Source: Lepidodermella squamata (Eukaryota; Animalia; Gastrotricha). From it: 64,000 bases of DNA. Shown piece after piece: positions 20,164 through 55,500 of the stretch. The stretch spans positions 1,240,001 through 1,304,000 of the forward strand of contig JBLDXI010000046.1 of assembly GCA_047495785.1 (NCBI GenBank), written 5' to 3'. A program made the position numbers and the translations under genes. The notes under the pieces are model-generated. The model saw only the letters and a program-made list of their open reading frames with translations, made no database searches and was not told where the DNA came from. Each line of letters starts with the position of its first letter. The first letter of the stretch is position 1.

Positions 20164-21297
20164 TCAAGCTCGACGGGACCGTTTTAAGCTTTTCTTCTTA
20201 GGGCAATCGATGTACTTGTGCTCGTAAGAGCTGCAGTTATGGCAGCGTTGGTCCCCTTTTAAATTTAAATAATCTCGAACGCGTTTAATAAAGTCAGTAT
20301 TCAAGTAACTTGCAACTTCATACCGATGGCGTTTAGCCGACATGGAATGCCGGGAAGCCCAGTCATTAATATATTCCAACGCATTTTCGGATTCTGCACG
20401 TGCGTGAGAAGGTTCAGTGAAGCCTTGAAGTACAACGATTTTCTTAATCCCAGCTTGAATTATATTTTTGCCGCAGGAGTACTTGATTTTTGTCGTCTCT
20501 TCAGCGATGAGCTCTGCCTTCTTCTGTCGACTTCTTTCCGACTTCTCAATTTTAGCGATTTTTGCATAACTTGCGGCGTCGCATGGCATTCTTGTCACGT
20601 AGAGTGAGCAGTCCTCCAAATTAAGTGTTTTCCTAAATAGCAGAGCATTTATTTCGGCGTGGCAGTTCCGTGTCTTCGGCATCGGGTTAGTATTTATTCC
20701 AGCAGCATTGCCATTCCAACCGATGGAGACTATTCGGCAAGCGTCATCGGCAATTACGCATCCAACTTGATCCCACTCATAATTGCTGTGTTTGGCAGCG
20801 AGCAGAGCAACCATCATGAAGAATTCATCCCATGATATCCGCTTTCGAATATCGTTATTGAAATAAGACTTCTGGAATGCATCAGCCAAATTTGACATAA
20901 GTTTAAAGCTGGAACATTCTTCTTTGGGGTTTTCAAAACTAATATTACCGATTTGATGATCTATTTTCACTGATCTTGTATACATCGAAACCTTAGGCTT
21001 GTAAGTTTTTTTATCTATCGTAAGTTGAATGCCGAAAATGGTAGCTTGCTCCGGGAGGATCGCCACTGTTCTAAAATGAAATGCATTCATTTCGGCGTCG
21101 ACTGTCTTGTTACTTTTCATTGTCGGTACAGTGTTAGTTGTATCACCCGTGTAGCCGATTCCAATTATCGGGTCCCTCAGTTTGACGACCAAACAAGCTC
21201 CTTCTTTGCGATCGCCTTTGCAGCGCATTGCAGCAGCAAGAGCGACAGAGTAATAATATTCACGCCATTCTTCATCCTGATGTGAGTGCCCAGACAT
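20164..21297 (-). CDS. Deaminase gene B, copy 1: tandem dCMP/cytidine deaminase domains (N-terminal degenerate, C-terminal HAE...PC-x35-C) + CCHC zinc knuckle; CDADC1-like architecture
   Basis: 377 aa, intronless. Domain 1: WREYYYSVALAAAMR, GACLV, IIGIGY, DAEMNA. Domain 2: SWDEFFM, QVGCVI, IVSIGWNG, CHAEINALLFR, LYVTRMPC, CGKNIIQAGIKKI. Knuckle CHNCSSYEHKYIDC followed by a basic tail. Confidence 0.9.
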   Translation of the reverse strand: MSGHSHQDEEWREYYYSVALAAAMRCKGDRKEGACLVVKLRDPIIGIGYTGDTTNTVPTMKSNKTVDAEMNAFHFRTVAILPEQATIFGIQLTIDKKTYKPKVSMYTRSVKIDHQIGNISFENPKEECSSFKLMSNLADAFQKSYFNNDIRKRISWDEFFMMVALLAAKHSNYEWDQVGCVIADDACRIVSIGWNGNAAGINTNPMPKTRNCHAEINALLFRKTLNLEDCSLYVTRMPCDAASYAKIAKIEKSERSRQKKAELIAEETTKIKYSCGKNIIQAGIKKIVVLQGFTEPSHARAESENALEYINDWASRHSMSAKRHRYEVASYLNTDFIKRVRDYLNLKGDQRCHNCSSYEHKYIDCPKKKSLKRSRRA

Positions 21298-23191
21298 GAT
21301 TTTATACTAAAATATGCTACCTTAATTACAGAAAACTTGAAAATTGGTTTTATTGATGGAATTGATGACATTATGAGTTAGTAAAGTACTTTATAGATTC
21401 TGGGGTCACATACTAGCAAATAATAATAGCACGGCCTAATGCGAAGAGAGCAGGTCTAAAACTGTGTTGAAGAATTGTGTTTCACGTTGTATGTTGCGCA
21501 AGAGTCACATGCTGATTGGTAGTTAGCCGAAACCAAAACTCAGCCGAAGGTAGGGCACTTCCGCACAGGTTGTTCTGCACAGTAATTAATAAATCATATC
21601 ATTAGTGTGTAATTTATTGTTTAATTGCGCACTAAGCGAGACTGGAAATAAGTTCCGCACAAGACTATTCCGCACACAAAAACTTCCGCTCATAGAGATT
21701 AGCCCGAAGTGAATCGACGTCCAGGCACTTGAGACAAAAATAGGGATAAACTGAATAAATGAATTGATGCTAAACGTGGCTAACAATCCAGATAGACCGC
21801 CCGCGGGAAATCAGATCCGCACAATTGAAGTTGTTGAAATCGTAACCAGAATAGCAGTCTATCTTATTCTAGTCATCTATTTAACCATGTCGCGCTCATT
21901 GAGATCCAACAAACAGATTAAATATTTTGACGCTCTACCCCCAAGAACACGTCGAGCAAAACAGAAGGCTGATGTGGCAGTGCTAGCAGTCGCAGATGTA
22001 CCACCACCACCGTTTGAGTTCGCGGACTTACCACCGCCTGTGCTCGTTGATTTGAACGTCGTGTGCTGGACATTCCGGGCATTGCCAAAGAAGAACTGTT
22101 CCCACTCCACCTGCCCCCGCGGCAGTTGCAGTCGAAGCTCCTGGTATTGTTGCAGAGAATAATGCTGTCTTGATTCAGCTCGAAAATCAGTCGCCGATGG
22201 CCGAGGGTGACGACGAGCGTCTCTCGCATCGCCTCCACCATGGCCACCACAAAACCGAAAGAAGAGCCTAAACCTTTTCTGCCCCAACCGCCGCCGCTGG
22301 AGCCGCAGGAACAACCTCAGCAGCCAGTGATACCTCAGCCGCCAGCCCAACAATGGCTACCTCCAGTTCAACCACAGGTGAAACTTCAAGAACAACAGCC
22401 TCAACAGCACGCGCTTATGATGATGATGATGATGCAGTTTTTTGCACAGGTGAAATTTAAAATTAAATTAAAAAATTCTGCTAACTTTATACGAACGACG
22501 AATCCACCTCAAATTTTCATTATTTTTTGAATATTTTTCGAATATTTACCGACAATGTTGACAAACGCACATCCTTAATTTGAGACTAAAACGGTAGATT
22601 TCCCCAAACTCTCTTTTGTTTCGCCCAAAATATTTGAAACAAAAGAAAAAAATTCGTTATTTGAAACAAATTATTAAAAAGAATTCGAAAAATTGAAATG
22701 GAAGCAAAATTTTCTCTGAATGATGACGTCGAAGAGCAATAAAAATATAATTAAAAAAATAATAAAATGAAATGTTTAATAATAAAAATAATTTAATTTA
22801 ATTTGAAAAGGCATTTCCTCAGCAGCAACTGCAGATGGCGCCTCAGGAACCGCTTCAACCTCAACTTCAACCACAGGCTCCTCAACCGCAGGCACCCATC
22901 CCGCCGCCGGAACCCATCCCATCGCCGGAACCCGAAGGAGAAAAGGGTTCTTTGCCACCACCGTCATTTGGGGTAATCTGGGTCATTGGGGCTATTCGGA
23001 CGAATGTTCATGCAAACAGGAGAATGAGCATGGCTCAAAAACAATCCGGCCGTTAGCAATAAAATTTTGCACGGAGTTGGGTGGAAAGACGACCCACATA
23101 CCGAAAAAATTTCATGACCTGAGAGTAAGTGGTTAGGAAGATACGGGTTCACCTTTCAGGTGTAAGTTTAACTCAGTTTAACTACTGTTCT

Positions 23192-24031
23192 TACTTGATA
23201 TAAACACCCATGTAGGGTATAATTTGAAGAGAAAGCGCATTGGCAGAGAACTCTTTTTCACTTTATTTGAACGTGACGTTTCGGCTCCCTCGCGAGCCAT
23301 CATCAGACTAGAAAGCAAAACAAGATAAAGAACCAGGTAAAGGGTTCTCGATCGAATAGTCGCGTCCGGCATTCAGACAGACAGGTCGAAGTCCGAGCCA
23401 GTGCGATTCATCGTACCCTTCAAGGACGAGAAGTGCGCTCGCCAACTCAAGTCCAGATTGAAAGAGCTCGCCGGGAAGCTGCTTGTACCAATCCAGGCTG
23501 TTTTCACCAGCCGGAAGATCGCGGAAAATTTTGGGGCCAAAGAACCGAAGCCAGACCTGGTCAACCGCCAGTGCGTCGTCTACCAGTTCAAATGTGGCCA
23601 GTGTGACGCTGGCTATATCGGAATGACGGAGAAGCACCTTCACCAGCGCGTTGAACAACATTGGCTACAGTCCAGCTCGATAGGGAAACATTTGCGCTCG
23701 CATGAATTGCCTGATGGCTTCAACCTGCACGCGTGTTTCACGGTGTTACGCAAATGCAGAAGCAGATGGGACTGCTTATTGCACGAAAGCTTGTTGATAA
23801 AGAAGATCAAACTAGCAATGAGCCTAAACGTGCAATCAGATTCTATCAAATTGAAGCTATTTTAGTGCTATTCATAATTTTTTGTTGTGGACTTTCTTTG
23901 TTGTGATTTCCCCCTTTACCTGGTTCTTTATCTTGTTTTGCTTTCTAGTCTGATGATGGCTCGCGAGGGAGCCGAAACGTCACGTTCAAATAAAGTGAAA
24001 AAGAGTTCTCTGCCAATGCGCTTTCTCTTCA
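23192..24031 (+). mobile_element. Second-family Penelope-like element: inverted pseudo-LTR, GIY-YIG fragment (23401-23865), pseudo-LTR
   Basis: CVVYQFKCGQCDAGYIG motif; 12-bp target duplication aactactgttct at 23180-23191 and 24032-24043; inverted pseudo-LTRs. Confidence 0.9.
23948..23983 (+). ncRNA. Minimal hammerhead ribozyme (inverted copy at ~23274-23309, minus strand)
   Basis: gtCTGATGAtggctcgcgagggagccGAAAcGTCac; stem II ggctc/gagcc covaries with the family-1 ggtcc/ggacc. Confidence 0.82.
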
Positions 24032-25567: not shown

Positions 25568-26638
25568 TTAAGCATTTAAATAATCTATAAGACGTTTCAG
25601 TGCCCCACATATGGTAATTACTTTAACTGCCGACTCCCTGGGCTCCTTTTGCCAAACTGGAGTTGGTGTCGGATATTCTTTGCCAATACTCTCATGTTCT
25701 ACCGTCGCTCCTGGATTTCCGAGAATCGCGATCCTCGAAATGCCACTCTGAATCATTGAGGGCAGGCATTGACAGGGAATATTCGGACAGGATGTCATAT
25801 AAACAGTGCAGCCTCGCGCATCGCCGCTTCGTAACATGAGGGATCTGAGAACCGCATTGCAACAGTCTTTACACCGACGGATAAACTTTCCTGAACTGTC
25901 TTTCTCGAATTTATCGTCTTTCATATTCCATCCAATGCCGATAATTTGGCCACGTGGATTAACAACAACAGCTCCAACTGCTTTGTCTTGACTATCTTTA
26001 TAACCAAGGTTATCAGACCGCGTAGATGCCAGCAGTGCCACAGATATGAAAAATTGCTGCCAGTCGAAGCAACACTCCTTTTCAATTTCGACTTGGTATT
26101 CAGGCTTTGTTTTATCTTTAAGATAGCCTTCCTCCTCGGCAATGAAACGTTGCAACTTTGAAATATATACACTGCCTAGCGTGGTTTCGGTTTTTAACTT
26201 GCAATAATCTTGAATTTGCTTCCACTCAGATTTCAGCTCAGGTTCCAGCTTAGTCTTCGAATATTGATACGGCGATATAATCGCTGCCGGAGACAACTGA
26301 CTCAAAATGTAAAGAGCCGGTGCATCTGGGAAATGAGTGAGATACAATATGCATCCGGTCAAGTCATCGATATTCTTAAATAAAACTGCGTTCATCTCTG
26401 ATTCGATGAATGCTTGCGATTTAACCTGATAAGGCCCGTCGATCGGTCCATCGTACCCGAAGCCGGCAAAATATCCGTTTGTGTTGACAATACAAACACC
26501 TCCTTTTTCCTTTTCGTTTTTATGCCTGGCGACTTTCGATCGCAAAGTAGCAAGGTGAGCAATGCCCATAAATAAATCGTGATTCCATCGGGGTTGAAAA
26601 GTCTCAGCTTGACTGTAAATAAATAGTTTATCAGTCAT
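25568..26638 (-). CDS. Deaminase gene A, copy 1: tandem pseudo-deaminase (both domains lack the canonical zinc/catalytic motifs)
   Basis: 356 aa, intronless. Domain 1: WNHDLFMGIAHLATLRS, GVCIVN, GFGYDG, IESEMNA, LTGCILYLTHFPD. Domain 2: WQQFFI, VGAVVVN, IIGIGWN, CCNAV, GCTVYMTSCP..CQC, SMIQSGI. Confidence 0.88.
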   Translation of the reverse strand: MTDKLFIYSQAETFQPRWNHDLFMGIAHLATLRSKVARHKNEKEKGGVCIVNTNGYFAGFGYDGPIDGPYQVKSQAFIESEMNAVLFKNIDDLTGCILYLTHFPDAPALYILSQLSPAAIISPYQYSKTKLEPELKSEWKQIQDYCKLKTETTLGSVYISKLQRFIAEEEGYLKDKTKPEYQVEIEKECCFDWQQFFISVALLASTRSDNLGYKDSQDKAVGAVVVNPRGQIIGIGWNMKDDKFEKDSSGKFIRRCKDCCNAVLRSLMLRSGDARGCTVYMTSCPNIPCQCLPSMIQSGISRIAILGNPGATVEHESIGKEYPTPTPVWQKEPRESAVKVITICGALKRLIDYLNA

Positions 26639-28407: not shown

Positions 28408-29296
28408 TCATAGAACTTCAAGGTCAACATGTCGCACTTCAGGGTATTTCTTCTTCAAATTCTTCTCAACCCGATCGATTTCCGCACCAATCAGGTCGAC
28501 AATACCCTCACCGTGCCGCAACATGAATGCCTCAAGGTCGTCCGTGTTCTTCGACGCTTTTTGCAGTTCCATCAGCAGAATGTCCAGGTCAATTCGGTCG
28601 AGGTAGACCCGCGTCAATTCGCGCCCGTCGATATCGACTTCGGCCTTAAAACGCACCCGCCTACCACCCATTTCGGTCGCTTTTATATCGTGAACAGCTC
28701 GAATGACTCGATCAGCCTCCAGTTCTTGACGCATCATTTCCCGCCGCGTTTCTGGGATCGACTGGCCGACGAGTATTACGGCATTTGTGTAAATGATTGA
28801 GGAGGCGACATCGCCGAGAAGCGTGCCGATGATGAGTGAACCGACCGCGTCGGGAATGTGCGAAGCGTAGACGTGGGACAGCGCGAGGCACGTGGCGGCT
28901 ACGCCGACGCCGAGAACTGCGACAAAGTCCTCGGCTAGCACAACCATTGTGTTTCAAGTAGTAAGTAGCACTTTGAACCGCGCGCTGATTGGTCAATTTA
29001 TTGTTGCTATGACTCCGGGATGAAACAATTTAGTCGTGCAATCCACTAATAAATTATTTTCTATTTATGCAAAAAATGACCTTGCCACACCCTCTGCACG
29101 GTTTCCATTGACCACGAGCGTAAACCCCATAATAATCGTAGCAATTTACTGCGGCAAAAAACACCTGTTGCAAAAAATTCAATGGATCGCCCAACCTACA
29201 TGTTTCATCCGGGAGTCATAGCAACGATCGATTGACCAATCAGCGCGCGCCCAGAAATGCTACTATTTACCTCAAGCACAATGACATTGACTGAAC
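28408..29296 (-). pseudogene. SLC30A9: Partial SLC30A9 duplicate (last exon only, 5' end interrupted by a MITE)
   Basis: Peptide near-identical to the 41049-41622 exon (ends VRHVDLEVL); homology resumes briefly after the MITE (acattgactgaa) and then stops. Confidence 0.85.
28945..29283. mobile_element. MITE with 2-bp (ac) target duplication inside the SLC30A9 fragment
   Basis: cattgtg...cacaatg ends and long imperfect arms. The empty site cacaacattgactgaa is visible in the paralogs at ~33451 and ~41580. Confidence 0.85.
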
Positions 29297-29420: not shown

Positions 29421-30566
29421 TCATGATATTGAGAGCCTGTTAATTATGATTACGATAATTATTATTATAATGTATCGCAATTTAGCCCAAAATGCTATTT
29501 CGGGACATGTTGCTTTTTTATGGTACAGTGAGCCGCAACGATAGCAGATAGTATCTCGCTTAATTTCCAATACCATGCGGACAGATTTGATAAAATCAGT
29601 TGTTAGATGGGTGGCTACATCCTCTTGGGTTCGTTTCTCAGGCATCCCATGTCTCGCAGACCAGTTGTTTAGTTGTAAAAGAGCATCATCATCGAGCCTT
29701 TGCATGGTATTGGGGTCGAGCCGCGGAAGAACATGAAGTTTTTTTATTCCGGATTGAATTATGTTTTTCCCGCATGAATAATCCATTGTTTCCTTCTTCT
29801 TTCTCTGCATCCTCTCCTTCTTCCTGTCATCACTCTCAACTGAATATTCGGCGTCACATGGCATCCGAGTAACGTATAGCGTGCAACTCTCCAAATTTAG
29901 GCGATGCCGAAAGAGAAGAGCGTTTATTTCGGCATGACAATTATCGTCGCCGGATTTGACATTTTTCACACCGACAGGACTTCCACTCCAACCGATTGAG
30001 ACCACCCTGCCGATGTCGTCAGCGATAACGCATCCGACCTTGAATCGTTTTTCCGAATGCTTGGCAGCATACATCGCTAAAACCATGTGAAATTCCTCCC
30101 ATGAGATGCGCTTCAGATTTGAGGCGAAGAATTTGGCTGCAACAGGCTTACAAAGAGGATCGAAGATGTGTCGTCGATCGCTGTCATCTTTTTCTGTGTC
30201 GAATTTTATTGTTTTGTATCTATGGCTGACAGTGACTAACTTGAAGTAGTAGTCGCGTCGCTCCCTCGTTACCGTCACACAAAAAAGGATTACTATGTCT
30301 GGCAACATCGCCTGAGTCCTGAAATGGAAAGCGTTCATTTCAGCCTCGATCTCAATCTGCGCAGCAGGCCCATCGACTACATTTGTAGGATTACCACGAT
30401 AGCCGATGCCGATAATCTCGTCTTTAAATTTTCTGACTAGACAAGCTCCGTGCTTAGTATCTCCAACTTTGCATCTCAAGGCGGCAGCCAGCGCTACGCA
30501 GTAGTAGTATCGCGACCATCTAGCATTCTCTTTTATTTCTTTTATAATCTGCTTCGACCTTTCCAT
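29421..30566 (-). CDS. Deaminase gene B, copy 2 (dead domain + HAE domain with PC-x27-C + CCHC knuckle)
   Basis: 381 aa, intronless; EAEMNA in domain 1, CHAEINALLFR and YVTRMPC...YSCGKNIIQSGI in domain 2, knuckle CYRCGSLYHKKATC. Confidence 0.9.
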   Translation of the reverse strand: MERSKQIIKEIKENARWSRYYYCVALAAALRCKVGDTKHGACLVRKFKDEIIGIGYRGNPTNVVDGPAAQIEIEAEMNAFHFRTQAMLPDIVILFCVTVTRERRDYYFKLVTVSHRYKTIKFDTEKDDSDRRHIFDPLCKPVAAKFFASNLKRISWEEFHMVLAMYAAKHSEKRFKVGCVIADDIGRVVSIGWSGSPVGVKNVKSGDDNCHAEINALLFRHRLNLESCTLYVTRMPCDAEYSVESDDRKKERMQRKKKETMDYSCGKNIIQSGIKKLHVLPRLDPNTMQRLDDDALLQLNNWSARHGMPEKRTQEDVATHLTTDFIKSVRMVLEIKRDTICYRCGSLYHKKATCPEIAFWAKLRYIIIIIIVIIINRLSIS

Positions 30567-30667
30567 ATTAACTTTTAATATAACTTGATCTAAAAATAGT
30601 AAATATTTATAACTTCGATGAACATTTTTTATTTTCCAAGTCCGCAGCTAATTCGATGGATTCTGAA

Positions 30668-31693
30668 TCATATTTCTGCCTCGAAGAGTAGACATAATTC
30701 GCTCATAGCGGATTCATTTCTGTCGATGACCCTGCATGCACATAATTTAGGTTCTTTGTGCCAGACTGGACCGAGTTGCGGGTAAACCTCCAACAAGGCA
30801 TTCAATTTTTGTTGGGAGTGTTTCGGATCATCAAAAACAGCTATTCTTGATATACCGCTTTGAATCATCGAAGCAATGCATGGACACTTGTCGGGTGGCC
30901 ATGAAGTCAAGAAAATTGTGCAGCCACGCGAATCATCGGTGCGGAACATGAGTGCAGCAAGAACTGCTTTACAGCAAGCAGGATACTCAATGCAGGATTC
31001 TTCGTCGGATTCTTCGTCAGAATTCCAACCGATGCCGATAATTTGGCCTCGTGTATTGACAATCACTGCACCGAATTTGCTGTCTTGGTTTTGCTGCGAA
31101 GCCAGAATTGCAGTTGACATGAAAAATTCCTCCCATTTCAGATATCGTTTTCCTTCTCCCAGGCAATTCCCTTCAACAAAGTTTTTCAAAGCGGCGAATT
31201 TATAGCGTGCGTCGATGTTTATTTTTTTTTCTTTCAATGGCTCAGTTCTTTCGGGAAAACAATATTTCGCCACTAAGTCCATATTAAAAGCCGTTGTCGA
31301 CACGATGGCTTTTGGTTTCAACTGCCGTAGCAGATAGAGAGCCTTCGTTTCAGGAGAATGAGTGAGATAGAGTGTGCAATTCGTTAAATCATTGACACTT
31401 TTGAACAGGACAGCGTTCATCTCCGATTCAATGTAGGCGTCAGTCATATTTTGATGAGGTCCATCTATTGGTCCATCGTAGCCGACGCCTGCTAAATACC
31501 CGTTCTCGGTAACTAAACAAACTCCAGCTTTCTCAGTGTTATTGCAGTGCCTAGCAGTTCTCGATCTCAAAATAGCCAAGTAGGCGATCCCCATGTATAG
31601 AGTATGCTCCCAGTCAGGCTCGTCTTTTTCTTCTCTAAGATACAGGTACAAGCCAGCTTCATCCCTTGAACTTAGATCAACCGAAGTCCCCAT
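30668..31693 (-). CDS. Deaminase gene A, copy 2 (double pseudo-deaminase)
   Basis: 341 aa, intronless; IESEMNA and THSPE in domain 1; CCKAV and WPPDKCPC in domain 2. Confidence 0.88.
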   Translation of the reverse strand: MGTSVDLSSRDEAGLYLYLREEKDEPDWEHTLYMGIAYLAILRSRTARHCNNTEKAGVCLVTENGYLAGVGYDGPIDGPHQNMTDAYIESEMNAVLFKSVNDLTNCTLYLTHSPETKALYLLRQLKPKAIVSTTAFNMDLVAKYCFPERTEPLKEKKINIDARYKFAALKNFVEGNCLGEGKRYLKWEEFFMSTAILASQQNQDSKFGAVIVNTRGQIIGIGWNSDEESDEESCIEYPACCKAVLAALMFRTDDSRGCTIFLTSWPPDKCPCIASMIQSGISRIAVFDDPKHSQQKLNALLEVYPQLGPVWHKEPKLCACRVIDRNESAMSELCLLFEAEI

Positions 31694-32919: not shown

Positions 32920-34455
32920 TCATAGAACTTCAAGGTCAACATGTCGCACTTCAGGGTATTTCTTCTTCAAATTCTTCTCAACCCGATCGATTTCCGCACC
33001 AATCAGGTCGACAATACCCTCCCCGTGCCGCAACATGAACGCCTCAAGGTCGTCCGTGTGCTTCGACGCTTTTTGCAGTTCCATCAGCAGAATATCCAGG
33101 TCAATTCGGTCGAGGTAGACCCGCGTCAATTCGCGCCCGTCGATATCGACTTCGGCCTTGAAACGCACCCGCCTGCCGCCCATTTCGGTCGCTTTTATAT
33201 CGTGAACAGCTCGAATGACTCGATCAGCATCCAGTTCTTGCCGCATCATTTCACGCCGCGTTTCTGGGATCGACTGGCCGACGAGTATTACGGCATTTGT
33301 ATAAATGATTGAGGAGGCGACACCGCCGAGTAGCGTGCCGATGATGAGAGAACCGACCGCGTCGGGAATGTGCGAAGCGTAGACGTGCGACAGCGCGAGG
33401 CAGGTGGCGGCTACGCCGACGCCGAGAACTGCGACACAGTCCTCGGCTAGCACAACATTGACTGAAGGATCATAACCACGACGAACGTATTCTCTATAGA
33501 AAAAATAGGAATTCAACAAATTTGATCGCGAAGTAGATTCGAATTTCGCTTAAAATTTAATCAATTTTTTTTTGAAGGATTTGTGGATTTTCGGTCACAT
33601 CTTTATGCTCATCTTTTAAATTCAGGGGATCGAGAATTTTAACCATTTTTTCTATTTTTTAATGGGTCTTACTTCAAGCGGAACCAAATTTTTGAATTTT
33701 CCATGAGCCTAAAACCAATTTTCGAAAACTTTCCAGAATGACGCGATTATAAATCATCATCGAAACTCAGCGTAAATTCTGTATAAGACGCATTTTTCAC
33801 TATAGAGTTAATACATTGCCTTAATTTTCTAGAAATATTCGAAAAGCGACTTTTTGCTTATCTAAGGTTCCGCAACATGCAGGTTTGGTTCCATCAGAAT
33901 ACATTCTGATATTAATTTCCAGTGCCAAATCCAAATTTTAGGCAAAAAATTTGAATAACATCAATTTTTGAATTTTTAAGATAGATTTCTCGAATTAGGG
34001 CCTCATCACGACTTCTCAAAAACTGAAGATAAATTCCTGAATACGGCGGGAAAAAAATTAAAAAAAAATAGTTAAAATTCAATATTCACTAAAACTTCAT
34101 TTTCAACTTTTTAAGGTGGATTTTTTAGAAAACATACATAAAAGGTAGTTTAGCCTCGGCCGCGGCGCGTCGAATTTGGCGAGCTCCGACGAGCAGACTG
34201 CCGCTTTCGGTTATGAAAGACCCGCCTAGAATAACTAGAGCCCAAGATAGAGATTCGAGCTGTTCCGGGTGAAGAAGGGCTTGAATGCCGTGGAACCACG
34301 ACAGGCCAGCGCCGACGAAGAAAATACCAACGCCAGAAATCAGCGAGCTGATGTAGGTCAAATTATACCAGCCATATCTAAATAATCAAATTAAATATGA
34401 AAAATAATCATGGAAAAAAATTACGGATGAATTTGGTCTGGTCTTCTTTTCGACT
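32920..34455 (-). pseudogene. SLC30A9: 5'-truncated SLC30A9 duplicate (last two exons and part of the preceding exon)
   Basis: Exons ~32920-33493, ~34138-34377 and 34425-34455 match the gene at 41049-42583. Homology ends abruptly at ~34455. Confidence 0.85.
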
Positions 34456-37410: not shown

Positions 37411-38559
37411 TCAAATTTCGGTATCAATGTTTCTCAATATTTCAGCCCAAAATGAAATGAAACTTGATAAGTGTTTTTTTAAGAGCGCAGTGTCTGATTC
37501 GACGCTTTCGGGGCAGTTTTTCATTTTATGATACAAGGAGCCACAAAGATGACAGATCGTGTCTTGCTTAATTTTCAAAACCATGCGAACAGAGTTGATG
37601 AAATCAGTCGTTAGATGGGTGGCTACTTTCTCGTGTGTTCGTTTCTCAGGCAACCAGTGTCTCGCAGACCAGTCATTCAACTGTAGAAGAGCATCATCGT
37701 CGAGATGTTGCTTGGTATTGGGGTCGAGCCGCGGGAGGACATAAATTTTTTTTATTCCTGATTGAATCATGCTCATCCCACACGAATATCGCATTTCTTT
37801 CTTGTCTTCTTCCGGCTTAACTGAATTTTCGGCGTCACACGGCATCCGAGTAACATATAGCGTGCATTTCTCCAAATTTATGCGATGCCGAAAGAGAAGA
37901 GCGTTAATTTCAGCGTGACAATTATCGTCATTGGGCGCCACTTTCTCCACCCCGGTAGGGCTTCCACACCAACCGATTGAAACCACTCTGCTGATGTCAT
38001 CAACGATAACGCATCCGACTTTGTAGTCTAGTTTCGAACGCTTGGCAGCAAACATCGCCAAAATCATGTGAAATTCCTCCCATGAGATGCGATCCAAATT
38101 TGATTTGAAGAATGTGTCTGCAACAGGCTGACAAATGAGATTGAAACAATTGCGTCGTTTCTTAACGTTCTCGTTTTGTTCCACGACGGGCGCTGTCGTT
38201 TTATATTTATGGTTGACCTTTACTAATTTGTAATAGTACTGGCATTGTTTGTCGACTATTTTGACACCGAAAAGGATTACGATGCCCGGTAACATCGCCT
38301 GAGTCCTGAAATGGAAAGCGTTCATTTCAGCATCGATGACCATCCGAGCAGCCTGTCCATGGACTAAATTTCTTGGATGACCCCGATAGCCAATGCCAAT
38401 AATCTCGTCTTTGTACTTCTTCACCAGGCAAGCTCCATGCTTGTGTTGCATATCTTGGCATCTTAAGGCGGCAGCTAGCGCTACTGAGTAGTAGTATCGT
38501 GACCAGCGAACATCATATGGATTGTTTATTTCATCCTCGATATTTTGCCATTCAGACAT
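37411..38559 (-). CDS. Deaminase gene B, copy 3 (dead domain + HAE domain with PC-x18-C + CCHC knuckle); likely start MSEWQ at 38559
   Basis: DAEMNA, CHAEINALLFR, YVTRMPC...YSCGMSMIQSGI, knuckle CHLCGSLYHKMKNC. Start chosen from alignment with the other copies and the upstream acceptor. Confidence 0.9.
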   Translation of the reverse strand: MSEWQNIEDEINNPYDVRWSRYYYSVALAAALRCQDMQHKHGACLVKKYKDEIIGIGYRGHPRNLVHGQAARMVIDAEMNAFHFRTQAMLPGIVILFGVKIVDKQCQYYYKLVKVNHKYKTTAPVVEQNENVKKRRNCFNLICQPVADTFFKSNLDRISWEEFHMILAMFAAKRSKLDYKVGCVIVDDISRVVSIGWCGSPTGVEKVAPNDDNCHAEINALLFRHRINLEKCTLYVTRMPCDAENSVKPEEDKKEMRYSCGMSMIQSGIKKIYVLPRLDPNTKQHLDDDALLQLNDWSARHWLPEKRTHEKVATHLTTDFINSVRMVLKIKQDTICHLCGSLYHKMKNCPESVESDTALLKKHLSSFISFWAEILRNIDTEI

Positions 38560-38653
38560 TATATAAAACTTTAAACTAGAAATGTATAAAATTTTCAATT
38601 GTTCGTCGTTGTGAAAAATAAAATGCACGCTATCACTTAGGTAGTTTATTAAC

Positions 38654-39841
38654 TCAACTGATCTGCAAAGGTGATTCATCACTTGTGATCACAAGGTCCT
38701 GGCCTGGAAAAAGGTTGCATATTGCCCCCATCGCGATTCCACTCTTACTGGCAATCCTACAGGCAACTAATTTGGGTTCTTTGTGCCAAACTGGACCGGG
38801 TTGAGGGTACACATTTAGCAATTTACTTAACTTTTTTTGGTCGTCACCATCGCTTGGGTTACCCAAAATAGCGATCCTTGATATGCCACATTGAATCATT
38901 GAAGGAATGCACCGACATTTATCGCGATCGGCATCTTCCAACCCTAATGGCCATGAGGTCATAAAAATAGTGCAGCCTCGTGAATCATCGGTGCGGAACA
39001 TGAGTGCAGCAAGAACTGCTTTACAGCAAGCAAGGTACTCAACATTTGATTCTTCGTCAGAATTCGATTCTGTGCCAATTGCTTCTGCACATTGTTGGTC
39101 GGACTTGTCTTCGGAATTCGATTCTGTGCCAATTGCTTCTGGATATCCTTTGCCAGAATTCCAACCTATGCCGATAATTTGGCCCCGAGTATTAACAATC
39201 ACTGCACCGAATTTACTGTTCAGGTTCTGTTGCGACGCCAAGATAGCAGTTGACATAAAAAATTCCTCCCATTCCAAGAAACGTGTTTTTTCTCCCTGGT
39301 GGTTGTTCTTGACAAATTCTATCAGAGCTGGCAGCTTCAGGCCTGCATTAAGCTCCACCCGAGTCGCTGACAAAATCCAATGAATTTTTTTAGGAAAGCA
39401 ATATTCTTTCACTAAGTCCGTCTCAGCTGCACTGTAAACTGTTGCCGACACGATTGCTTTTGGCTTCAACTGTCTAATTAGATAGAGAGCCTTCGTGTCA
39501 GGAAAATGAGTAAGATAGATAGTGCAATTCGTTAAATCAACGACACTTTTAAATAGAACAGCGTTCATCTCCGATTCAATATAGGCTTCAGTCATATCTT
39601 GATGAGCTCCATCTATTGGTCCATCGTAACCGACGCCTGCTATATACCCGCTTTCGTCGACTATACAAACTCCAGCTTTCTCAGTCTTATTGCTGTGCCG
39701 CGCAGTGCTTGATCTCAAAATAGCTAAGTAAGCGATCCCCATGTATAGAGTATGCTCCCAGTCAGGCTCGTCTTTTTCTTCTCTAAGATACAGGTACAAG
39801 CCAGCTTCATCCCTTGAACTTAGATCAACCGAAGTCCCCAT
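38654..39841 (-). CDS. Deaminase gene A, copy 3 (double pseudo-deaminase)
   Basis: 395 aa, intronless; first 44 aa identical to copy 2; IESEMNA, THFPD, CCKAV, KCRC; internal EAIGTESNS duplication. Confidence 0.88.
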   Translation of the reverse strand: MGTSVDLSSRDEAGLYLYLREEKDEPDWEHTLYMGIAYLAILRSSTARHSNKTEKAGVCIVDESGYIAGVGYDGPIDGAHQDMTEAYIESEMNAVLFKSVVDLTNCTIYLTHFPDTKALYLIRQLKPKAIVSATVYSAAETDLVKEYCFPKKIHWILSATRVELNAGLKLPALIEFVKNNHQGEKTRFLEWEEFFMSTAILASQQNLNSKFGAVIVNTRGQIIGIGWNSGKGYPEAIGTESNSEDKSDQQCAEAIGTESNSDEESNVEYLACCKAVLAALMFRTDDSRGCTIFMTSWPLGLEDADRDKCRCIPSMIQCGISRIAILGNPSDGDDQKKLSKLLNVYPQPGPVWHKEPKLVACRIASKSGIAMGAICNLFPGQDLVITSDESPLQIS

Positions 39842-41048: not shown

Positions 41049-44000
41049 TCATAGAACTTCAAGGTCAACATGTCGCACTTCAGGGTATTTCTTCTTCAAA
41101 TTTTTCTCAACCCGATCGATTTCCGCGCCAATCAGGTCGACAATACCCTCACCGTGCCGCAGCATGAACGCCTCAAGGTCGTCCGTATTTTTCGACGCCT
41201 TTTGCAGTTCCATCAGCAGAATGTCCAGGTCAATTCGGTCGAGGTAGACCCGCGTCAATTCGCGCCCGTCAATATCAACCTCGGCCTTGAAACGCACCCG
41301 CCTGCCGCCCATTTCGGTCGCCTTAATGTCGTGAACAGCTCGAATGACTCGATCAGCCTCCAGTTCTTGCCGCATCATTTCACGCCGCGTTTCTGGGATC
41401 GACTGGCCGACGAGAATTACGGCGTTCGTGTAAATGATTGAGGAGGCGACACCGCCGAGTAGCGTGCCGATGATGAGAGAACCGACCGCGTCGGGAATGT
41501 GCGAGGCGTAGACGTGGGACAGCGCGAGGCAGGTAGCGGCTACGCCGACGCCGAGAACTGCGACACAGTCCTCGGCTAGCACAACATTGACTGAAGGATC
41601 ATAACCACGACGAACGTATTCTCTATTAAAAAAAATAATAAAATAGAAACTCAAAAAATGTGATTCGAATTTTATCAATTGTTTAAGATGGATTTGTGGA
41701 GTTTCATCTTTTGCTCATCTTCTCATCTTTTAAATTGAGGGGATCGACGCAATTTAAAACATTTTCAATTTTTTAACGGGTCTTGGCTCTCTGTCAGCTA
41801 TCTGCAAGGCTATCTGCACCCACCTAGTGGGTGTCATAAGGTGACTATTTACACCCAGTGGGTGCTCTAATCTTGCTATTTACACCCGAAAAGGGTGTAT
41901 TTAGCATCTTAAGAACACCCACTGGGTTTAAATAGCCACTTCCTGAACTTTTAGCGGAATCAAATTGTATAATTTTCAACGAGCCTAAAACCAATTTTCG
42001 AATAATCAAATTCAGGGTAAAATTCAGTATTCACGAATCGAATTTCTCGAATTAGGGCCTCACCACGCCGTCTCAAAAACTGAAGATTATTTCCAGAATA
42101 CGGCGGAAAATTGAAAAAAAATAGCTAATTCAAAATTTGCTAAAAATTCATTTTCAACTTTTTAAGGTGGATTTTTCTAGAACACATACATAAAAGGTAG
42201 TTTAGCCTCGGCCGCGGCGCGTCGAATTTGGCGAGCTCCGACGAGCAGACTGCCGCTTTCGGTTATGAAAGACCCGCCTAGAATAACTAGAGCCCAAGAT
42301 AGAGATTCGAGCTGTTCCGGGTGGAGAAGGGCTTGAATGCCGTGAAACCACGACAGGCCAGCACCGACGAAGAATATACCAACGCCAGAAATCAGCGAGC
42401 TGATGTACGTCAAATTATACCAGCCATATCTAAATCATAAAATGAAATATAAAAAAATCATAGAAAAAAAACAAACAAATTACGGATGAATTTGGTCTGG
42501 TCTTCTTTTCGACTGATGAATGCCGAAGGCTAGAATAGCCTGATTTAGGGTATCAGCCAGACTGTGAACGGATTCAGCAAACACTAAAAAAATTAAAGGT
42601 ATTTTTTCAATTTCACATTTTTCAAATTTTTCAACAAAACTTACTTGCTGACGAGCCAGTGTGAAGATATGCGAATAATTTCATGCCGAAATTGGCCGCA
42701 TTCACCGCAATAGCAGCCCATACAACGCGGCCGGAGCCTTTCAGGCTCTGTGACTGCGCCTTGTCCTGTTCATTGGTGAAGAACGCCTCATCGGCGCGGC
42801 CATTCGACGATTTCATCCACCGACTGCGCACATCCGCGTCTTGCGTCTGGCAACGACCGCGTTTCTTCGAATCATTCGCGTTCAATGGCTGTTGATCAAA
42901 CGCATTGCCGTTCTCGTTCGAGGCTGAGTAAGAACGAAGTGCGGTTAGAAGGGCCATCGAATTTTCGCCATGGTCCTCCAAAGCCTGACGCCTCCGCTCT
43001 TTTTCCTGCTCTAACCGAGCTAGACTACCCCAAACATCGACAGCTCTAAATTTCGGGGGAAAAACTCTTAAATTCAGATTGAATTATCAAGGTGGACGAA
43101 CCTTTTTTCGACGTCAACTCGAAGATATACAACAATATCCGGCCGGCCGTCGAAAGGACTGCGCCGTTTGGTGTTCCAAAGTCCAGCCAAATCACTAAAA
43201 TAGCATCAAATTAAAAAAATGGACATTAAAAATCAAGGCAGATGACACGTAAAAATGGGGTTTGATGCCGGATTCAAATTGAGTGACCGACCCAAATCAT
43301 TCGGTATCGCGTCAACTGTTTTGTATGAAACATGAAAGAAGCCGGAAAACCCCGATAAAATGTACCTTTTCTGTCTCTGAATCCCCCTTAAAAATCCCGC
43401 AGAACCAATGCCCGAGAATTTTCGTATCACAGATCCTGGCGTGTGAAGGGCGGTCGCGTGACCATACCACGTGACTCTTGGAAGCGTGCTCGCCACGCGC
43501 CCAGGAGCACGGGCGGGTTCTCCCATCCGCTCATCTGCCGCTTCTCAGTCGGTTCCGGCTGTGCTATTAGTTGTGTTCCTCAAGTAATAAATTCATGTAA
43601 CCTGTTATATTCCTGTTTCCTTGGGTTTTGTTAACAAGGTTTTTTTACAATACGCATCGAGATCGGCAAGAAATTAAGCTGTTTTCGGCCGCAAATAACA
43701 TGCATCCCGGCGGTGATCGACAAGCTGCGTTATGTGGACTCACAGATGTTGAGGAAATGTTCATTGCAATGGCGCATTCCCAAATCAACTATTACATTGT
43801 TCCAGGTGGCCAGTATCGATACTCGGGTCACTGCATCGCTTTCGAAAAAAACTCGGCGAAAAGTGTTCGCGAATTACCGATTGATTTATCGCAACTTCCA
43901 GCAACATGTCCATCCAGGTGATACTGTGGTTTTTTAAACATGAACTCTCACTTCTGATATTTTCTAGCCACTGTGTCAACATCGACATCATCAACGGAAG

Positions 44001-45676: not shown

Positions 45677-48600
45677 TTAAAGAATTTCAAGATCGACATA
45701 TCGCACTTCGGGGAATTTCTTCTTCAGATTCACCTCGACGCGGTCAATTTCCGCGCCAATCAGGTCAACAATCGCCTCGCCGTGCTTCAACATAAACGCC
45801 TCGAGGCCGTGTTTAGTCTTCGCAGCTAGTTGCATCTCGAGCAGTAAAATGTCCAGGTCTAACCTGTCGAGGTAGACCCGCGTAACCGCCCGGCCGTCCA
45901 CGTCAACTTCAGCCTTAAAACGCACCCGATGCCCGCCCATTTCCGTCGCTTTGATGTCATGAGCCGCTCGAATTATGCGGTCCATCTCCAATTCGCGGCG
46001 AATGATATCGCGACGCTGGCTTGGAATCGACTTGCCGACTAGAATTATCGCGTTTGTATACACGATGAACGACGCAACGCCGGCTAGCATTGTGCCGATG
46101 ACTAACGACCCGATCGCGTCTGGAATGTGCGAGTTGAGGAAATGGGACAGACCTAGGCAGGTGACTGCTACCCCCACCCCGCTAACCGCTACGATATCTT
46201 CGGCTAGAATGACGTTAACAGACGGGTCGTAGCCTCGGAGTACGTACTCTTTGAAGGTCAATTTCGCCTCTAGAGCTTGGGCTTTGATCTCGCGAATGCC
46301 GCTCCTGAGACTCACGCTTTCAGACGCGAGAGAAACCGCCATAATTCCGAGGGCTAGGTCGAGCGATTCCAACGGCTCGGGGTGGGTCAGGGCTTGGAAG
46401 CCGTGCATCCACGACAAACAGGCGCCGACGAAAAAAATGCCGACTCCGCTGACTAGCGAACTGACGTAGGAGAAGTTGTACCAGCCGTACGGGTGCAACT
46501 GGTCCGCGTTGCGTTTCGACTGGTAGATGCCGAACGCTAGCATAGCTTGGTTGAGTGTGTCGGCTATTGAATGAACGACCTCGGCGAAAATTGCCGATGA
46601 ACCGGTGAAAGCGTAAGCGACTAGCTTGATTGCAACGTTGAAAATGTCGACTGTTATCGCAAGCCAAACAACCCGGCCGGAGCCTTGAAGGCGTTCGCGC
46701 TAAAATTAGAAAAAAATATGAAATCCTTTACTAAAATACTTTGCAAGCAGAATAGTTAACAATTTCAACACGAAATGTGCTCATCCGAAATCTCTCCGGC
46801 ATTCAAACGTAAGCTTTTCAACCCAATTTTTCTTACTTTTCAAATTTCGAAATGCCTCCTGCCGTTCCTTTACTCAGAATTGTTCTCAATTAGTTTATTT
46901 TCTTTATTTTCTTATTTTTCCAAGATTTTTTCAAGACATAAACGCCTGTTTCAACGAACAGCCGAAAGCCCGCCACCGCCCACACGAAGGCGTCCTGCTA
47001 CATCATGCCTTGTTAGGGAGGAAACTTGACTTCGATTTTATCATCGTCAGTTCATCTCGTGCAATGTGGACCTTGAAAATGACACATTCTTCGAATTTGA
47101 TCTCAATTCATTATCAGGAATGCGGGGGTTTGGAATTTATTAAAGAATTCCAAGGACGTACGCATCCGCTCCTCATAGGCAAGACCGGACATGTCTTGGC
47201 AGCCCAGTTGAGTATTATGACTTACTACCTCGCGTTTGTAATGCCGAATGATTTTGATCAATAAGTCTACACCGTTGTTCGCTCCCTTCCGCCATTGATC
47301 CCACAGGAAGTCTGGCGCCCGTTGAGAAGAAGGCACTCGAGCGGGGCCTTACAATTATTAATTTTTCTAAAAACGAAAAACTTGGCTCATTAAAATCTGT
47401 TTCAGACCCCCTGATTCTGGTTCCGATTCTGATCCAGATTGTCAGTTTGATGCTAACGATGATGATCACGTTTTCGATTCACCTGCTGTTGGTCGCACAT
47501 GATGAAGCCTCGACATCGAAAACCGTTCACGAAACGCCCACGCTCTAAGCTGGTCTGAAGTTGAGGTTGTACCGGAAACTCCGCCCATAACATGCCATAG
47601 CCGAAAATCTCTCTTTACCCGCACCGCCCAATTAATCATCGGCTACCGCCGAATCAACAACAGTCAATTTATCCGATGCAACGAGAAATGAGCTGACCAC
47701 CCAAGTGATCGACATCCTCAAATCCAACATTATCTATATATCAGATATTTTTGATAGCAGAACGCCCATCCGCTACACCTAAACGGCGCTGAAAGTGTTG
47801 CCATGTGCTGAATGCCCCCACCTTAACCTTTAGATCTAGTCGCGCTCGTATAAGTAATAGCACGTGTCGCCTTTCAGTGTTATGTAACTAAATTACTTCG
47901 GCGGGGATATCAATCCTTCACGGACTTTCTCGGATATTTGCGCCGACGTTTATGACATCGACAAGTTCTATTATTTGGCCGACGCCAACTTGACTGAAAT
48001 TGTTAATTTCGACACCCGATTTGATGCGACCCTCGACCACGTTCTTAACATGATGGATAAATATTCGAAACGTGGTTTCAAAGGCTTGGATAACTCTCAA
48101 AAAGGAACAGTTCTCAAATGAGTCTACACCGTTGTCTACTCATTCCGCAATTATTTGACCACAAGGAGTATGATAATTGTTTTCTTTAACAATATAGTCA
48201 TATCTTCTTTTGTAGTGCAATCATCGGATTTGCAGCAGTAGCTGCGGTGATGTTCCTCGTTTTGATTTTATTCACCTTGTTAATTAAGAAAACGTTCAAA
48301 AGGTGAGCTAATGTCCAACCTGCCGAGCTAAGTCCGAGCTATGTGGAGGAGGGCGCTGGCAGTTCGATCCAATACGTTGCCAACAACGAACAGGTCACTT
48401 TTGATCGCCCTGGAGTAAAGATGGATTGAGATTTTCGCAATGAGATGTTGCACGTTTTTGCAACATACTCTTTCTACCAAGTGCATATACATTCTTCCTA
48501 GGAATATTGCTAATTTTTTTTCCAATATAAGGTTTCTACTATAATTCCTACTTCTGCTCAAATTCTACTGAATAACTTTGTTTGATTTTAGATTGTATCT

Positions 48601-51962: not shown

Positions 51963-52535
51963 TGCCTGATGTCTTCAATTCGTCCGATGACTTCGATTCT
52001 TGGTTCAATACGAACAGTATGTTAGGTGACACGTCGCTGGTAACGCGTCTCCACGAGGTTCTCCGGCCGTTTTTGTTGCGTCGTCTCAAGAATGACGTCG
52101 AAAAGTCGTTGCCGCCGAAAAAGGAGGTCAAACTCTACGTCGGCCTGTCGAAGTTGCAACGCGAGTTGTACACGAAAATTCTGCTAAAGGACATTGACGT
52201 TATCAACGGCGCGGGTAAAACCGAGAAAATGCGTCTCATGAACATTTTGATGCAGCTGCGAAAGTGCGCGAACCACCCGTATTTGTTCGACGGCGTTGAA
52301 CCCGGTCCGCCGTACACGACTGATATGCATTTGATTGAAAATTCTGGCAAAATGGTCGTGCTAGACCGGTTGTTGCCGAAATTGCAGGCGCAGGGCTCTC
52401 GCGTGCTCATTTTCTCGCAAATGACTCGAATGTTGGACATTTTGGAGGACTACTGCCTGTGGCGTGGGTATGGCTATTGCCGCCTCGATGGTAACACTGC
52501 GCATGAAGAGCGGCAGAAGTCGATTTTGGAGTACA
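51963..52535 (+). repeat. 573-bp inverted duplicate of ISWI coding segment 53974-54546
   Basis: The translation matches the ISWI ATPase segment [10 protein letters not shown]...KSILEY exactly, in the opposite orientation. Confidence 0.95.
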
Positions 52536-55500
52536 CCAGCCGCGTGAGATTCGTCAAATTCAGCGTTTTCCTTTTCAATCAACGAAATCAACGTGTTGCA
52601 GCGACGTTGCAGCTCAGACGCGAGGCGACTTTTGATGAACCAATCGAAGCGAAATTGCGGGGCCTGGCGAATAGCGGCGCGCAGTTCGTCGTACACATCC
52701 TCTCTATCGAAGCCCAACTTGTGCAGCATAACCACAAGGAAACGATCTTCATCCTCCGTGAAATTCTTGCCCTTATTCTGGCCGTACGGAATTTTCAACT
52801 GCTGCAACGGCGTTTGGTAACGAGCCATTTTCGCCTCGAGCGCCTGCCGGACGGCGATGCGACGTTGAATTCGCTGCTCGCCCTTTTCAATCTGCGCCAT
52901 AATTCGCTCGTGGTCTTGCAGTTCGTTGTAACGCTCCCAGAAAACAGCGGCATAGGCGCGGACCTCCTCGGGCGTTTTGCCTTCAACCTCCTTACAGATC
53001 GAATCAATGTCATCGCGGCCGAATTTTTCGTGCGCTTTCACGAACTGCGAAAAATCACGACGGCTCCAGTTGGCGAAGCCTTGTTTCAGCAGTTCCTCTT
53101 TCTCGGCCGTTTCTTCATCGGTCATCGCCTCAGCCGAGTCGATTTTCGCCTGTTCGTCCTTACGTTCCTGCTCCAATTTCGCCGGGTCATCACCCTCGAC
53201 CGGTTCCGGCTTCGGCACCTTGTAGCCAATAGATTTTCGGAACCAGTAGATCTCCTTCTCGAGAAGCTCGAACAAACGAGGCGGGTAGAACTGGAAATCT
53301 TGAACGTTCGGCTGCTTCGGGGGCCGCGGGGCTCGAGGCGCTTTCGGCTCAGACCCGACCCTCAGCGCCTCCCTAAAATACGCATCGACATTGAGATTCG
53401 ACCGACGTTCACGCTTCGGCGGTTCGACGAAGAACAAATTCGGATTACGATTTTGCTTCTCTTTCCAATTTTCGCCCTCAAAATTGTAGACGGTATCGAG
53501 GCTGAAATTACGCAGCGACGATTCACCCATCGACTCGATGCGCTTCTTCATCTCAGCCGTCCTCTCCTCGGATTTCATGATAATCGCGTCGATATCTTCG
53601 TCGGAAATCGTCGAATCTTTAGCGGCGAAAATGCTCTGGGCGCCGTGGCGAATCATCGCCAACATTTCGTCCTTATGCAAGCGGTTCGCCGCATCGACTA
53701 GCCGGCCCTGTTGGATGACGACGTTGTCAAGTCGCAGCTTCAAATCAGCCCGTTCAACGATTCGCTCTTCAACAGTCTGGTCTGTGATCATTCGAATGAC
53801 GCGCACCTCCTTCTTCTGGCCGATACGATGCGCTCGGTCCATGGCCTGCAAATCGACCTGAGGGTTCCAGTCCGAGTCGTACAGAATGACGATATCTGCC
53901 GTTGCCAAGTTGATACCGAGACCGCCGGCACGGGTTGACAGCAAAAACACGAATTTACTAGAATCAGGCGCGTTGTACTCCAAAATCGACTTCTGCCGCT
54001 CTTCATGCGCAGTGTTACCATCGAGGCGGCAATAGCCATACCCACGCCACAGGCAGTAGTCCTCCAAAATGTCCAACATTCGAGTCATTTGCGAGAAAAT
54101 GAGCACGCGAGAGCCCTGCGCCTGCAATTTCGGCAACAACCGGTCTAGCACGACCATTTTGCCAGAATTTTCAATCAAATGCATATCAGTCGTGTACGGC
54201 GGACCGGGTTCAACGCCGTCGAACAAATACGGGTGGTTCGCGCACTTTCGCAGCTGCATCAAAATGTTCATGAGACGCATTTTCTCGGTTTTACCCGCGC
54301 CGTTGATAACGTCAATGTCCTTTAGCAGAATTTTCGTGTACAACTCGCGTTGCAACTTCGACAGGCCGACGTAGAGTTTGACCTCCTTTTTCGGCGGCAA
54401 CGACTTTTCGACGTCATTCTTGAGACGACGCAACAAAAACGGCCGGAGAACCTCGTGGAGACGCGTTACCAGCGACGTGTCACCTAACATACTGTTCGTA
54501 TTGAACCAAGAATCGAAGTCATCGGACGAATTGAAGACATCAGGCAGTAAAAAGTTGAGTAGGGCCCACAATTCGTGGAGATTGTTCTGCAGCGGCGTGC
54601 CGGTGATCAAAAGCCGATGGGCCGATCGGAATTCGCGGACAATTTCCGACAGCTTACTCTTCTCGTTTTTGATACGATGCGCCTCGTCGATGACCAAATA
54701 CCGCCAGTTGAATTTCTTCAGGGCTGTTTTTTCGAGGATAACCATTTCGTAGGAAGTGACGCAAACGTTCCACTCCCCGCCGAGTAGGACATCTCGGACG
54801 AAATCGGCACGTTCCTCTTTATTTGCCAGTAAAGAAATGGCTTTCATCGACGGGCACCACCTCGTGAATTCATTCATCCAGTTGGAAATTGTCGATTTTG
54901 GGGCGATGACCAAATGAGGCCCTGGTGCGTTTTTGTAGTGTTTCATATAGCCGAGTAGCGAGATGGTTTGCAGGGTTTTGCCGAGACCCATTTCGTCGGC
55001 TAGAATGCCGTTGATACCATTATGGCACAGTTGAATCATCCAGTTCAAACCGCGAATTTGGTAATCACGTAACAAACCGCCAGTAATGTCTGAAAAATCA
55101 AAAAAATTGTAAAACTCAATATCATGACTATTCATTCATTTTTTACATGGTGGAGATTCCTGGAAAACCATCGCTGTTCCGCCTTTTTTCGCTTCTTCAA
55201 TAAGTTCTTCGTCTTCCTCTTGTTCGGTTCGCACGTGACGATTGCTAAAAAAGAAAAAAAGCGGTAAAATATCAATATCAAAATTCTGAAAATTCAATAA
55301 ATCCCCCTTAATAACTCCAATAAAATTTTAAACAGAGATATACTACTGCCCGCCGGTGCGAATCATTGTTAACTGAAAACTATAAAAATCGAATTATAAA
55401 TCGAATATATAAATAAATCCATCATCCCACTAATCCTCCTTAAAATGGATAAAATAATATAATTCTCACTCCATGCGTTTGGGCAGTGTGTCTCATGATA

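Follow-up and report, generated by a model that had tools for sequence, protein, structure and literature searches.

Tandem DCTD-like genes with a C-terminal zinc knuckle suggest that a nucleotide enzyme has been redirected to RNA or DNA

The window, as we call the whole 64-kb stretch of DNA that was analysed, contains three minus-strand units, each composed of a truncated copy of a cation-efflux exon, a gene of a family that we designate A and a gene of a family that we designate B (Table 1). The A and B proteins are co-linear paralogues that share 22-27% identity over ~310 residues. In every A and B protein, the Pfam model dCMP_cyt_deam_1 (PF00383) matched two stretches, and the B proteins scored 67-75 bits (E 1e-18 to 3e-21), where the cut-off is 25. 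A1 lies upstream of B1 at a distance of 4.3 kb, and the sequence between the two genes is transposon-derived.

Table 1. Positions of the B and A genes and of the features within them
Feature	Position	Strand	Description
B1	20164..21297	minus	Single-exon ORF, 377 aa counting the stop; two-domain deaminase, knuckle and basic tail
B1 N-terminal degenerate deaminase fold	20860..21285	minus	Residues ~5-146; D-A-E replaces HxE; without PCxxC
B1 C-terminal DCTD-like domain	20302..20832	minus	Residues ~156-332
B1 zinc-site residues	HAE 20653-20661; PC 20581-20586; second Cys 20473-20475	minus	
B1 K/E-rich insertion	20476..20580	minus	35 residues between the zinc-ligand cysteines; helical hairpin predicted
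B1 CCHC zinc knuckle	20203..20244	minus	C352-C365
B1 basic tail	20167..20202	minus	12 residues 3' of the knuckle; B1 only
B2	29421..30566	minus	381 aa; knuckle 29505-29546; HAE 29928-29936
B2 insertion between cysteines	29775-29855	minus	27 residues
B3	37411..38559	minus	382 aa from the conserved Met; mechanical ORF reaches 38682
B3 knuckle; insertion between cysteines	37513-37554; 37783-37836	minus	Insertion of 18 residues
A1	25568..26638	minus	Two-domain paralogue of B, ~23% identical; HxE glutamate lost in both domains; without knuckle
A2	30668..31693	minus	Stops ~100 nt upstream of the B2 start codon
A3	38654..39841	minus	Ends ~95 nt upstream of the B3 ATG

The spacers of ~100 nt that separate A2 from B2 (30567-30667) and A3 from B3 (38560-38653) contain AATAAA and a T-rich YAG that closely precedes the start codon of the B gene, and a similar YAG is located ahead of the B1 start (21298-21320). 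These signals hint at co-transcription, by way of an operon or of trans-splicing, but would suit a compact promoter equally well. We consider it unlikely that A and B form a fusion protein, as the upstream extension of the B3 ORF is unconserved and lies in another frame. The A2 and A3 genes are near-identical over their first ~60 codons (dS 0.14), with dS >0.5 further on, a pattern that fits a putative conversion tract continuing upstream. The truncated cation-efflux (zinc-transporter-like) exon copies, at 28408-28947, 32920-33519 and 41049-41678, show a mutual identity of 93-95%, and all three are 73% identical to a longer cation-efflux exon at 45677-46543. Divergence is much greater among the adjoining A and B genes than among these truncated copies, which points to gene conversion or a history of mosaic assembly. 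A search of the whole window against Rfam returned no match.

Whole-gene dN/dS was 0.34 for the B2-B3 pair and 0.25 for the A2-A3 pair. Between B1 and either B2 or B3, synonymous sites are saturated and pN is 0.38, and the three B ORFs, of 377-382 aa, all remain open. The dN/dS of 0.34, the saturation of synonymous sites at a pN of 0.38 and the synonymous changes in the codons of the zinc-knuckle ligands described below led us to conclude that the B genes are under selection. On this sequence evidence we take all three B copies to be genuine single-exon genes that are under selection.

Domain-wise alignment showed that the C-terminal domain of B reads C-H-A-E-I-N-A in B1-B3, and that both cysteines of the PCxxC motif are kept but split. 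In the N-terminal domain of B the corresponding sequence is D/E-A-E-M-N-A, in which the His is lost, and PCxxC is absent. The A proteins have E-S-E at the HxE position of the N-terminal domain and no Cys motif there; in their C-terminal domain, Cys replaces His and the catalytic Glu is lost, with C-x-C. The alignment thus indicates one potentially active site in B and none in A, and since the N-terminal domain of B is without any zinc ligand, its role can only be architectural.

The AlphaFold2 models of B1 (pLDDT 82.8, pTM 0.84) and B3 (pLDDT 76.1, pTM 0.77) are alike in topology. In the modelled proteins the N-terminal domain departs from the standard fold by a long beta-hairpin, which in B1 occupies the place expected for helix 3, the linker between the domains amounts to approximately one helix, and the core of the C-terminal domain is canonical. 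A sequence search of the PDB matched human DCTD (2w4l) with an E-value of 7.5e-14, and Foldseek ranked the same structure first, followed by bacterial DCTD, RibD and TadA. We rejected an assignment of the B family to AID/APOBEC, as no APOBEC family was found in Pfam and no APOBEC chain occurred among the Foldseek matches listed. TadA was rejected because DCTD outranks it in Pfam and Foldseek, and CDADC1 because no CDADC1 chain was found at E <=0.01 in the PDB search or among the fold matches listed.

The rim of the active site is unusual in B. The cysteines of the split PCxxC motif are separated by 35 residues in B1, 27 in B2 and 18 in B3, compared with a spacing of 2 in 137 of the 139 related domains taken from the 150 best relatives. 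The insert was modelled as a helical hairpin in B1. An unspliced intron was considered as the origin of this K/E-rich segment and rejected, given that it is purine-rich, is in frame in all three copies and has ends that are not intron-like. The cap loop that precedes HxE is 15-16 residues long in B and without a Cys/His cluster, whereas the relatives have a median of 27 residues and a 5th percentile of 19. In dCMP deaminases the segment inserted after strand 2 and before helix 2 caps the pocket and restricts the substrate to a soluble base, and inserts inside CxxC are typical of the RNA deaminases Tad1/ADAR (PMC3239186). Other signatures vary between the copies. At the NxxP motif, located at the end of strand 2, B1 has the N and no P, and B2 and B3 have the P and no N; TxxxT in strand 3 is present in B2 and B3 and reads SxxxT in B1; and the allosteric-type motif G(Y/W)N(A/G) is intact only in B1 (G-W-N-G), the Asn being replaced by Ser in B2 and by Cys in B3. 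The isoelectric points of the B proteins (8.6-9.3) are basic and those of the A proteins (5.0-7.9) are acidic to neutral, and the two families carry opposite net charges.

Beyond the deaminase fold, by ~20 residues, begins a CCHC zinc knuckle. In B1, the motif CHNCSSYEHKYIDC runs from 20244 down to 20203, and is followed by P and then by KKKSLKRSRRA. A six-frame scan for C-x2-C-x4-H-x4-C yielded exactly three matches in the 64 kb (20203-20244, 29505-29546 and 37513-37554), all of them on the minus strand and at the homologous C-terminal position of B1, B2 and B3. First-order Markov resamples of the window gave a mean of 0.07 matches, and shuffled B proteins contained the motif in 4-9 of 20000 trials. 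With 0.07 matches expected and three seen, and the motif so rare in shuffles, chance is not the explanation. Across B1-B3, six of the 14 motif positions are invariant, namely the four ligands, S6 and K10, as is the P that follows. The ligand codons vary synonymously between the copies (TGC/TGT and CAC/CAT), and the 39 codons that encode the knuckle and its preceding helix have a pN/pS of 0.21-0.36. The residues after the knuckle, 12 in B1 and 27 and 33 in the other B copies, are unconserved. B1 and B2 have a net basic charge over the tail region, and the basic tail of B1 may be either NLS-like or nucleic-acid binding. In the AlphaFold2 models of B1 and B3 the knuckle is coil of low confidence (pLDDT 51-74). 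The A proteins have the helix that precedes the knuckle and then stop just short of the knuckle itself, and the tail might therefore form a contact that discriminates between A and B. Removal of the knuckle from the protein by splicing was rejected, as there is no splice donor after it.

The Pfam model zf-CCHC (PF00098) aligned end to end with the knuckle, at 12.0 and 13.4 bits and so under its cut-off of 20.8, and zf-CCHC_4 scored 13.8-16.1 bits on the B tails against a cut-off of 27. Glycine positions typical of the zf-CCHC profile are partly replaced in the B knuckles. When a profile of the three 39-residue tails was compared with solved structures, it matched nucleocapsid protein (6.9e-5), Lin28A (~1e-4) and ZCCHC8 (3e-3). 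The best ~25 PDB matches were all knuckles of nucleic-acid-binding proteins, and the further matches were essentially all knuckles. The ligand spacing of the B knuckle is identical to that of the Lin28A, ZCCHC8 and retroelement nucleocapsid knuckles, from which it differs as a single knuckle appended to an enzyme and in falling below the Pfam gathering threshold. We infer that the B knuckle belongs to the nucleic-acid-binding type, with predicted binding of zinc and of single strands. Some CCHC knuckles mediate protein contacts.

These results bear on an original prediction that had been made for the region. An exact C-x2-C-x4-H-x4-C near the C-terminus of all three B genes was reported there and was recovered by our scan. 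The ligands had been described as invariant amid changing spacers, and all four are indeed kept, although S6 and K10 are invariant as well. The basic tail attributed to the first copy corresponds to the 12 residues after the B1 knuckle, and is not common to B2 and B3. An architecture of two dCMP_cyt_deam domains plus zf-CCHC had been proposed, and all three B genes do combine two DCTD-type deaminase folds with a C-terminal CCHC knuckle; the Pfam score of zf-CCHC remained under the cut-off. The comparison with the nucleocapsid and Lin28 knuckles agrees with the E-values of the tail profile. The prediction that a free-nucleotide deaminase has been retargeted is thereby partly supported. For the proposed tie of the knuckle to retroelements we found no link, and the description 'retroviral-type' fits the spacing only.

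The search for relatives of B with a B1-B3 profile against 1.84 billion protein cluster representatives gave no match below 1e-30. The best matches (E 2e-30 to 1e-18) were uncharacterized tandem DCTD-DCTD proteins of similar length from Leptopilina, Aphis, Crassostrea, Hypsibius and decapods, with 22-30% identity to B, and the knuckle motif was present in 0 of the 150 best matches. Word searches with the whole of B1 and with residues 262-357 of B2 returned no match, exact look-ups of B1 and A2 returned no record, comparison of the B alignment with viral and metagenome contigs revealed no relative, and a search of the literature for a deaminase with a knuckle found no relevant report. The window is of animal, non-human origin. 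An ISWI/SMARCA5-like exon in it (52361-55135, minus strand), searched as a single exon, showed 72-75% identity to its best matches, from molluscs, fish and arthropods. As nothing in the protein collection exceeds 75% identity to this exon, the source lineage is absent from that collection; because the lineage is unsampled, the lack of relatives means that there are none in the sampled world, and not that the family is unique to one species. The final ~8% of the ISWI-like exon is unaligned to its homologues. At the 3' end of the exon, an internal ISWI segment has a 573-bp inverted duplicate with 100% identity (51963-52535 and 53974-54546), which is either a genuine inverted duplication or an assembly artefact. 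The deaminase fold and the knuckle are each known, and their combination with a split zinc motif, a short cap and a dead partner was found nowhere else in the databases and literature searched.

Among known systems, DCTD (human 2w4l, S. mutans 2hvv/2hvw) is the best match to the C-terminal domain of B in both sequence and fold, and the two have the HxE-NA and IQxGI helix signatures in common, along with TxxxT, which reads SxxxT in B1. However, DCTD consists of one domain only, its PCxxC is contiguous, its cap insert is long and it lacks a knuckle, whereas B carries an additional dead domain and a CCHC tail, with only 15-16 residues in the cap and 18-35 residues separating PC from the second C. 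CDADC1 is a vertebrate (d)CTP deaminase in which the N-terminal domain is inactive and the C-terminal domain active (PMC12088426, PMC12184417). It shares with B the presence of two DCTD-like domains per chain, of which the N-terminal one is inactive or architectural and the C-terminal one active, and a basic C-terminal tail, proposed in CDADC1 to be a nuclear localization signal and found among the B copies only in B1. Unlike that of B, which lacks zinc ligands, the N-terminal domain of CDADC1 retains a PCxxC zinc site and an HAG motif; its linker exceeds 100 residues, compared with about one helix in B, and it has no knuckle. The original prediction had treated DCTD and CDADC1 as free-nucleotide enzymes that lack a knuckle. 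Neither of them has one; DCTD is the closest protein of solved structure, and CDADC1 deaminates (d)CTP (PMC12088426). We examined 14 of the invertebrate tandem DCTD-DCTD proteins: in most, both domains retain HxE and an unsplit PCxxC, and the knuckle motif is absent from all of them.

In CDAT8 of Methanopyrus, which edits tRNA, a dCMP-deaminase has become joined to an RNA-binding domain (PMC3239186). The logic of this tRNA C-to-U editor resembles that of B, in that a catalytic domain of the dCMP-deaminase clade is joined to a C-terminal nucleic-acid module; it differs from B in being archaeal and in having THUMP in place of CCHC, and the likeness is drawn at the level of the clade, by description. 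The APOBEC3G-type enzymes and ADAT2/ADAT3 likewise combine one active deaminase fold with one that is inactive (see also PMC5889660). The APOBEC3G-type double-domain deaminases resemble the A and B genes in forming tandem lineage-specific arrays with catalytically dead paralogues, which in the APOBEC case have been proposed to be nucleic-acid binders or decoys. In contrast to B, the APOBEC3G-type and ADAT2/ADAT3 proteins belong to another deaminase clade and lack a knuckle.

Our best reading of B, to which we assign a probability of about 0.4, is a DCTD-derived deaminase that acts on cytosine within single-stranded polynucleotides. The predicted knuckle would hold single-stranded RNA or DNA, and the shortened cap loop, along with the K/E-rich hairpin between the cysteines, would reshape the entrance of the active site, such that B would deaminate polynucleotide cytosine and not free dCMP or dCTP. 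The A proteins may act as non-catalytic partners in a DCTD-like ring, or as decoys. We favour such retargeting because the cap is shortened, PCxxC is split, B is basic and CDAT8 offers a precedent. Against it stand the nearest relatives by sequence and fold, which are free-nucleotide enzymes, and the retention of G-W-N-G in B1. The zf-CCHC scores under the cut-off, the low confidence of the modelled knuckle, the protein contacts made by some CCHC knuckles, the restriction of the basic tail to B1 and the symmetry of the few substitutions in the repeat copies also weigh on that side. We also speculate, while considering it unlikely, that in this locus an animal lineage evolved deamination of polynucleotide cytosine independently, starting from the dCMP-deaminase clade and not from AID/APOBEC, and in which an active, knuckle-bearing B and a dead A would have expanded in tandem and would target the single strands of retroelements or viruses, or edit RNA.

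The main rival explanation is that B still deaminates free (d)CMP or (d)CTP, and that the knuckle only localizes or activates the enzyme on single-stranded nucleic acid. The tether could be, for example, the cell's own or foreign RNA, or intermediates of replication or reverse transcription, and the pyrimidine pool would be altered locally. We regard this as possible, if somewhat doubtful. It accords with DCTD being the best match in sequence and fold, with the conservation of HxE-NA, of TxxxT (SxxxT in B1) and of G-W-N-G in B1, and with a layout of dead N-terminal and live C-terminal domains like that of the (d)CTP deaminase CDADC1 (PMC12088426); bacterial defence through deaminase-mediated dNTP depletion, as cited in the same paper, lends it a further parallel. 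It fits poorly with the shortening of the very cap by which entry is confined to a soluble base, with the split PCxxC, with the Ser and Cys that stand in B2 and B3 for the Asn of G(Y/W)N(A/G), and with the lack of any knuckle precedent on pool deaminases among the 150 best matches or in the literature searched.

The CCHC module may instead not bind nucleic acid at all, and serve as a structural zinc site or in contacts between proteins, such as binding to A or the assembly of oligomers. The sub-threshold Pfam scores, the partly replaced glycines, the opposite net charges of A and B, and an A protein that shares the preceding helix yet stops before the knuckle are all consistent with this; even so, we judge it improbable, as the best ~25 PDB matches all come from nucleic-acid-binding proteins and the tail regions of B1 and B2 carry a net basic charge. 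Lastly, the B ORFs could be non-functional, as unexpressed duplicates or decaying copies in which the motif has no function. The region is rich in repeats, segmental duplications and transposons, and no homologue is on record in the protein, viral and metagenome collections searched, in which the source lineage is unsampled. Nevertheless, three ORFs of 377-382 aa have stayed open while their synonymous sites diverged to saturation, dN/dS lies at 0.25-0.34, and the catalytic and knuckle ligands are invariant though their codons have changed synonymously, all of which makes decay very hard to credit.

Polynucleotide deaminases arose several times from nucleotide-metabolizing ancestors, and the intermediate steps are seldom visible. 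The B genes unite a DCTD-type core, the loss of a polymer-excluding cap, a zinc-motif insertion like that of RNA deaminases and an appended, putative single-strand-binding knuckle, which together suggest that an enzyme of nucleotide metabolism has been redirected to RNA or DNA. Should the genes prove to be expressed and to leave editing footprints, the B family would show that animals reached the deamination of cytosine in nucleic acids a second time, without APOBEC, and would offer a compact natural scaffold to set beside engineered base editors. Otherwise, B would be an unusual, lineage-restricted variant of the nucleotide-pool deaminases.

The repeat copies in the window showed no excess of transitions and no asymmetry of C/T versus A/G changes, in counts that are tiny. 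A Pfam scan identified reverse-transcriptase/endonuclease ORFs of non-LTR retrotransposons at 872-3208, 8066-8560 and 10193-11374. A Penelope-like GIY-YIG unit of ~1.35 kb, with an ORF of 155-163 aa, is present between 11900 and 16600 in four copies of 98-99.6% identity, one of them inverted, and another copy, ~70% identical, lies between A1 and B1 at 23401-23865.
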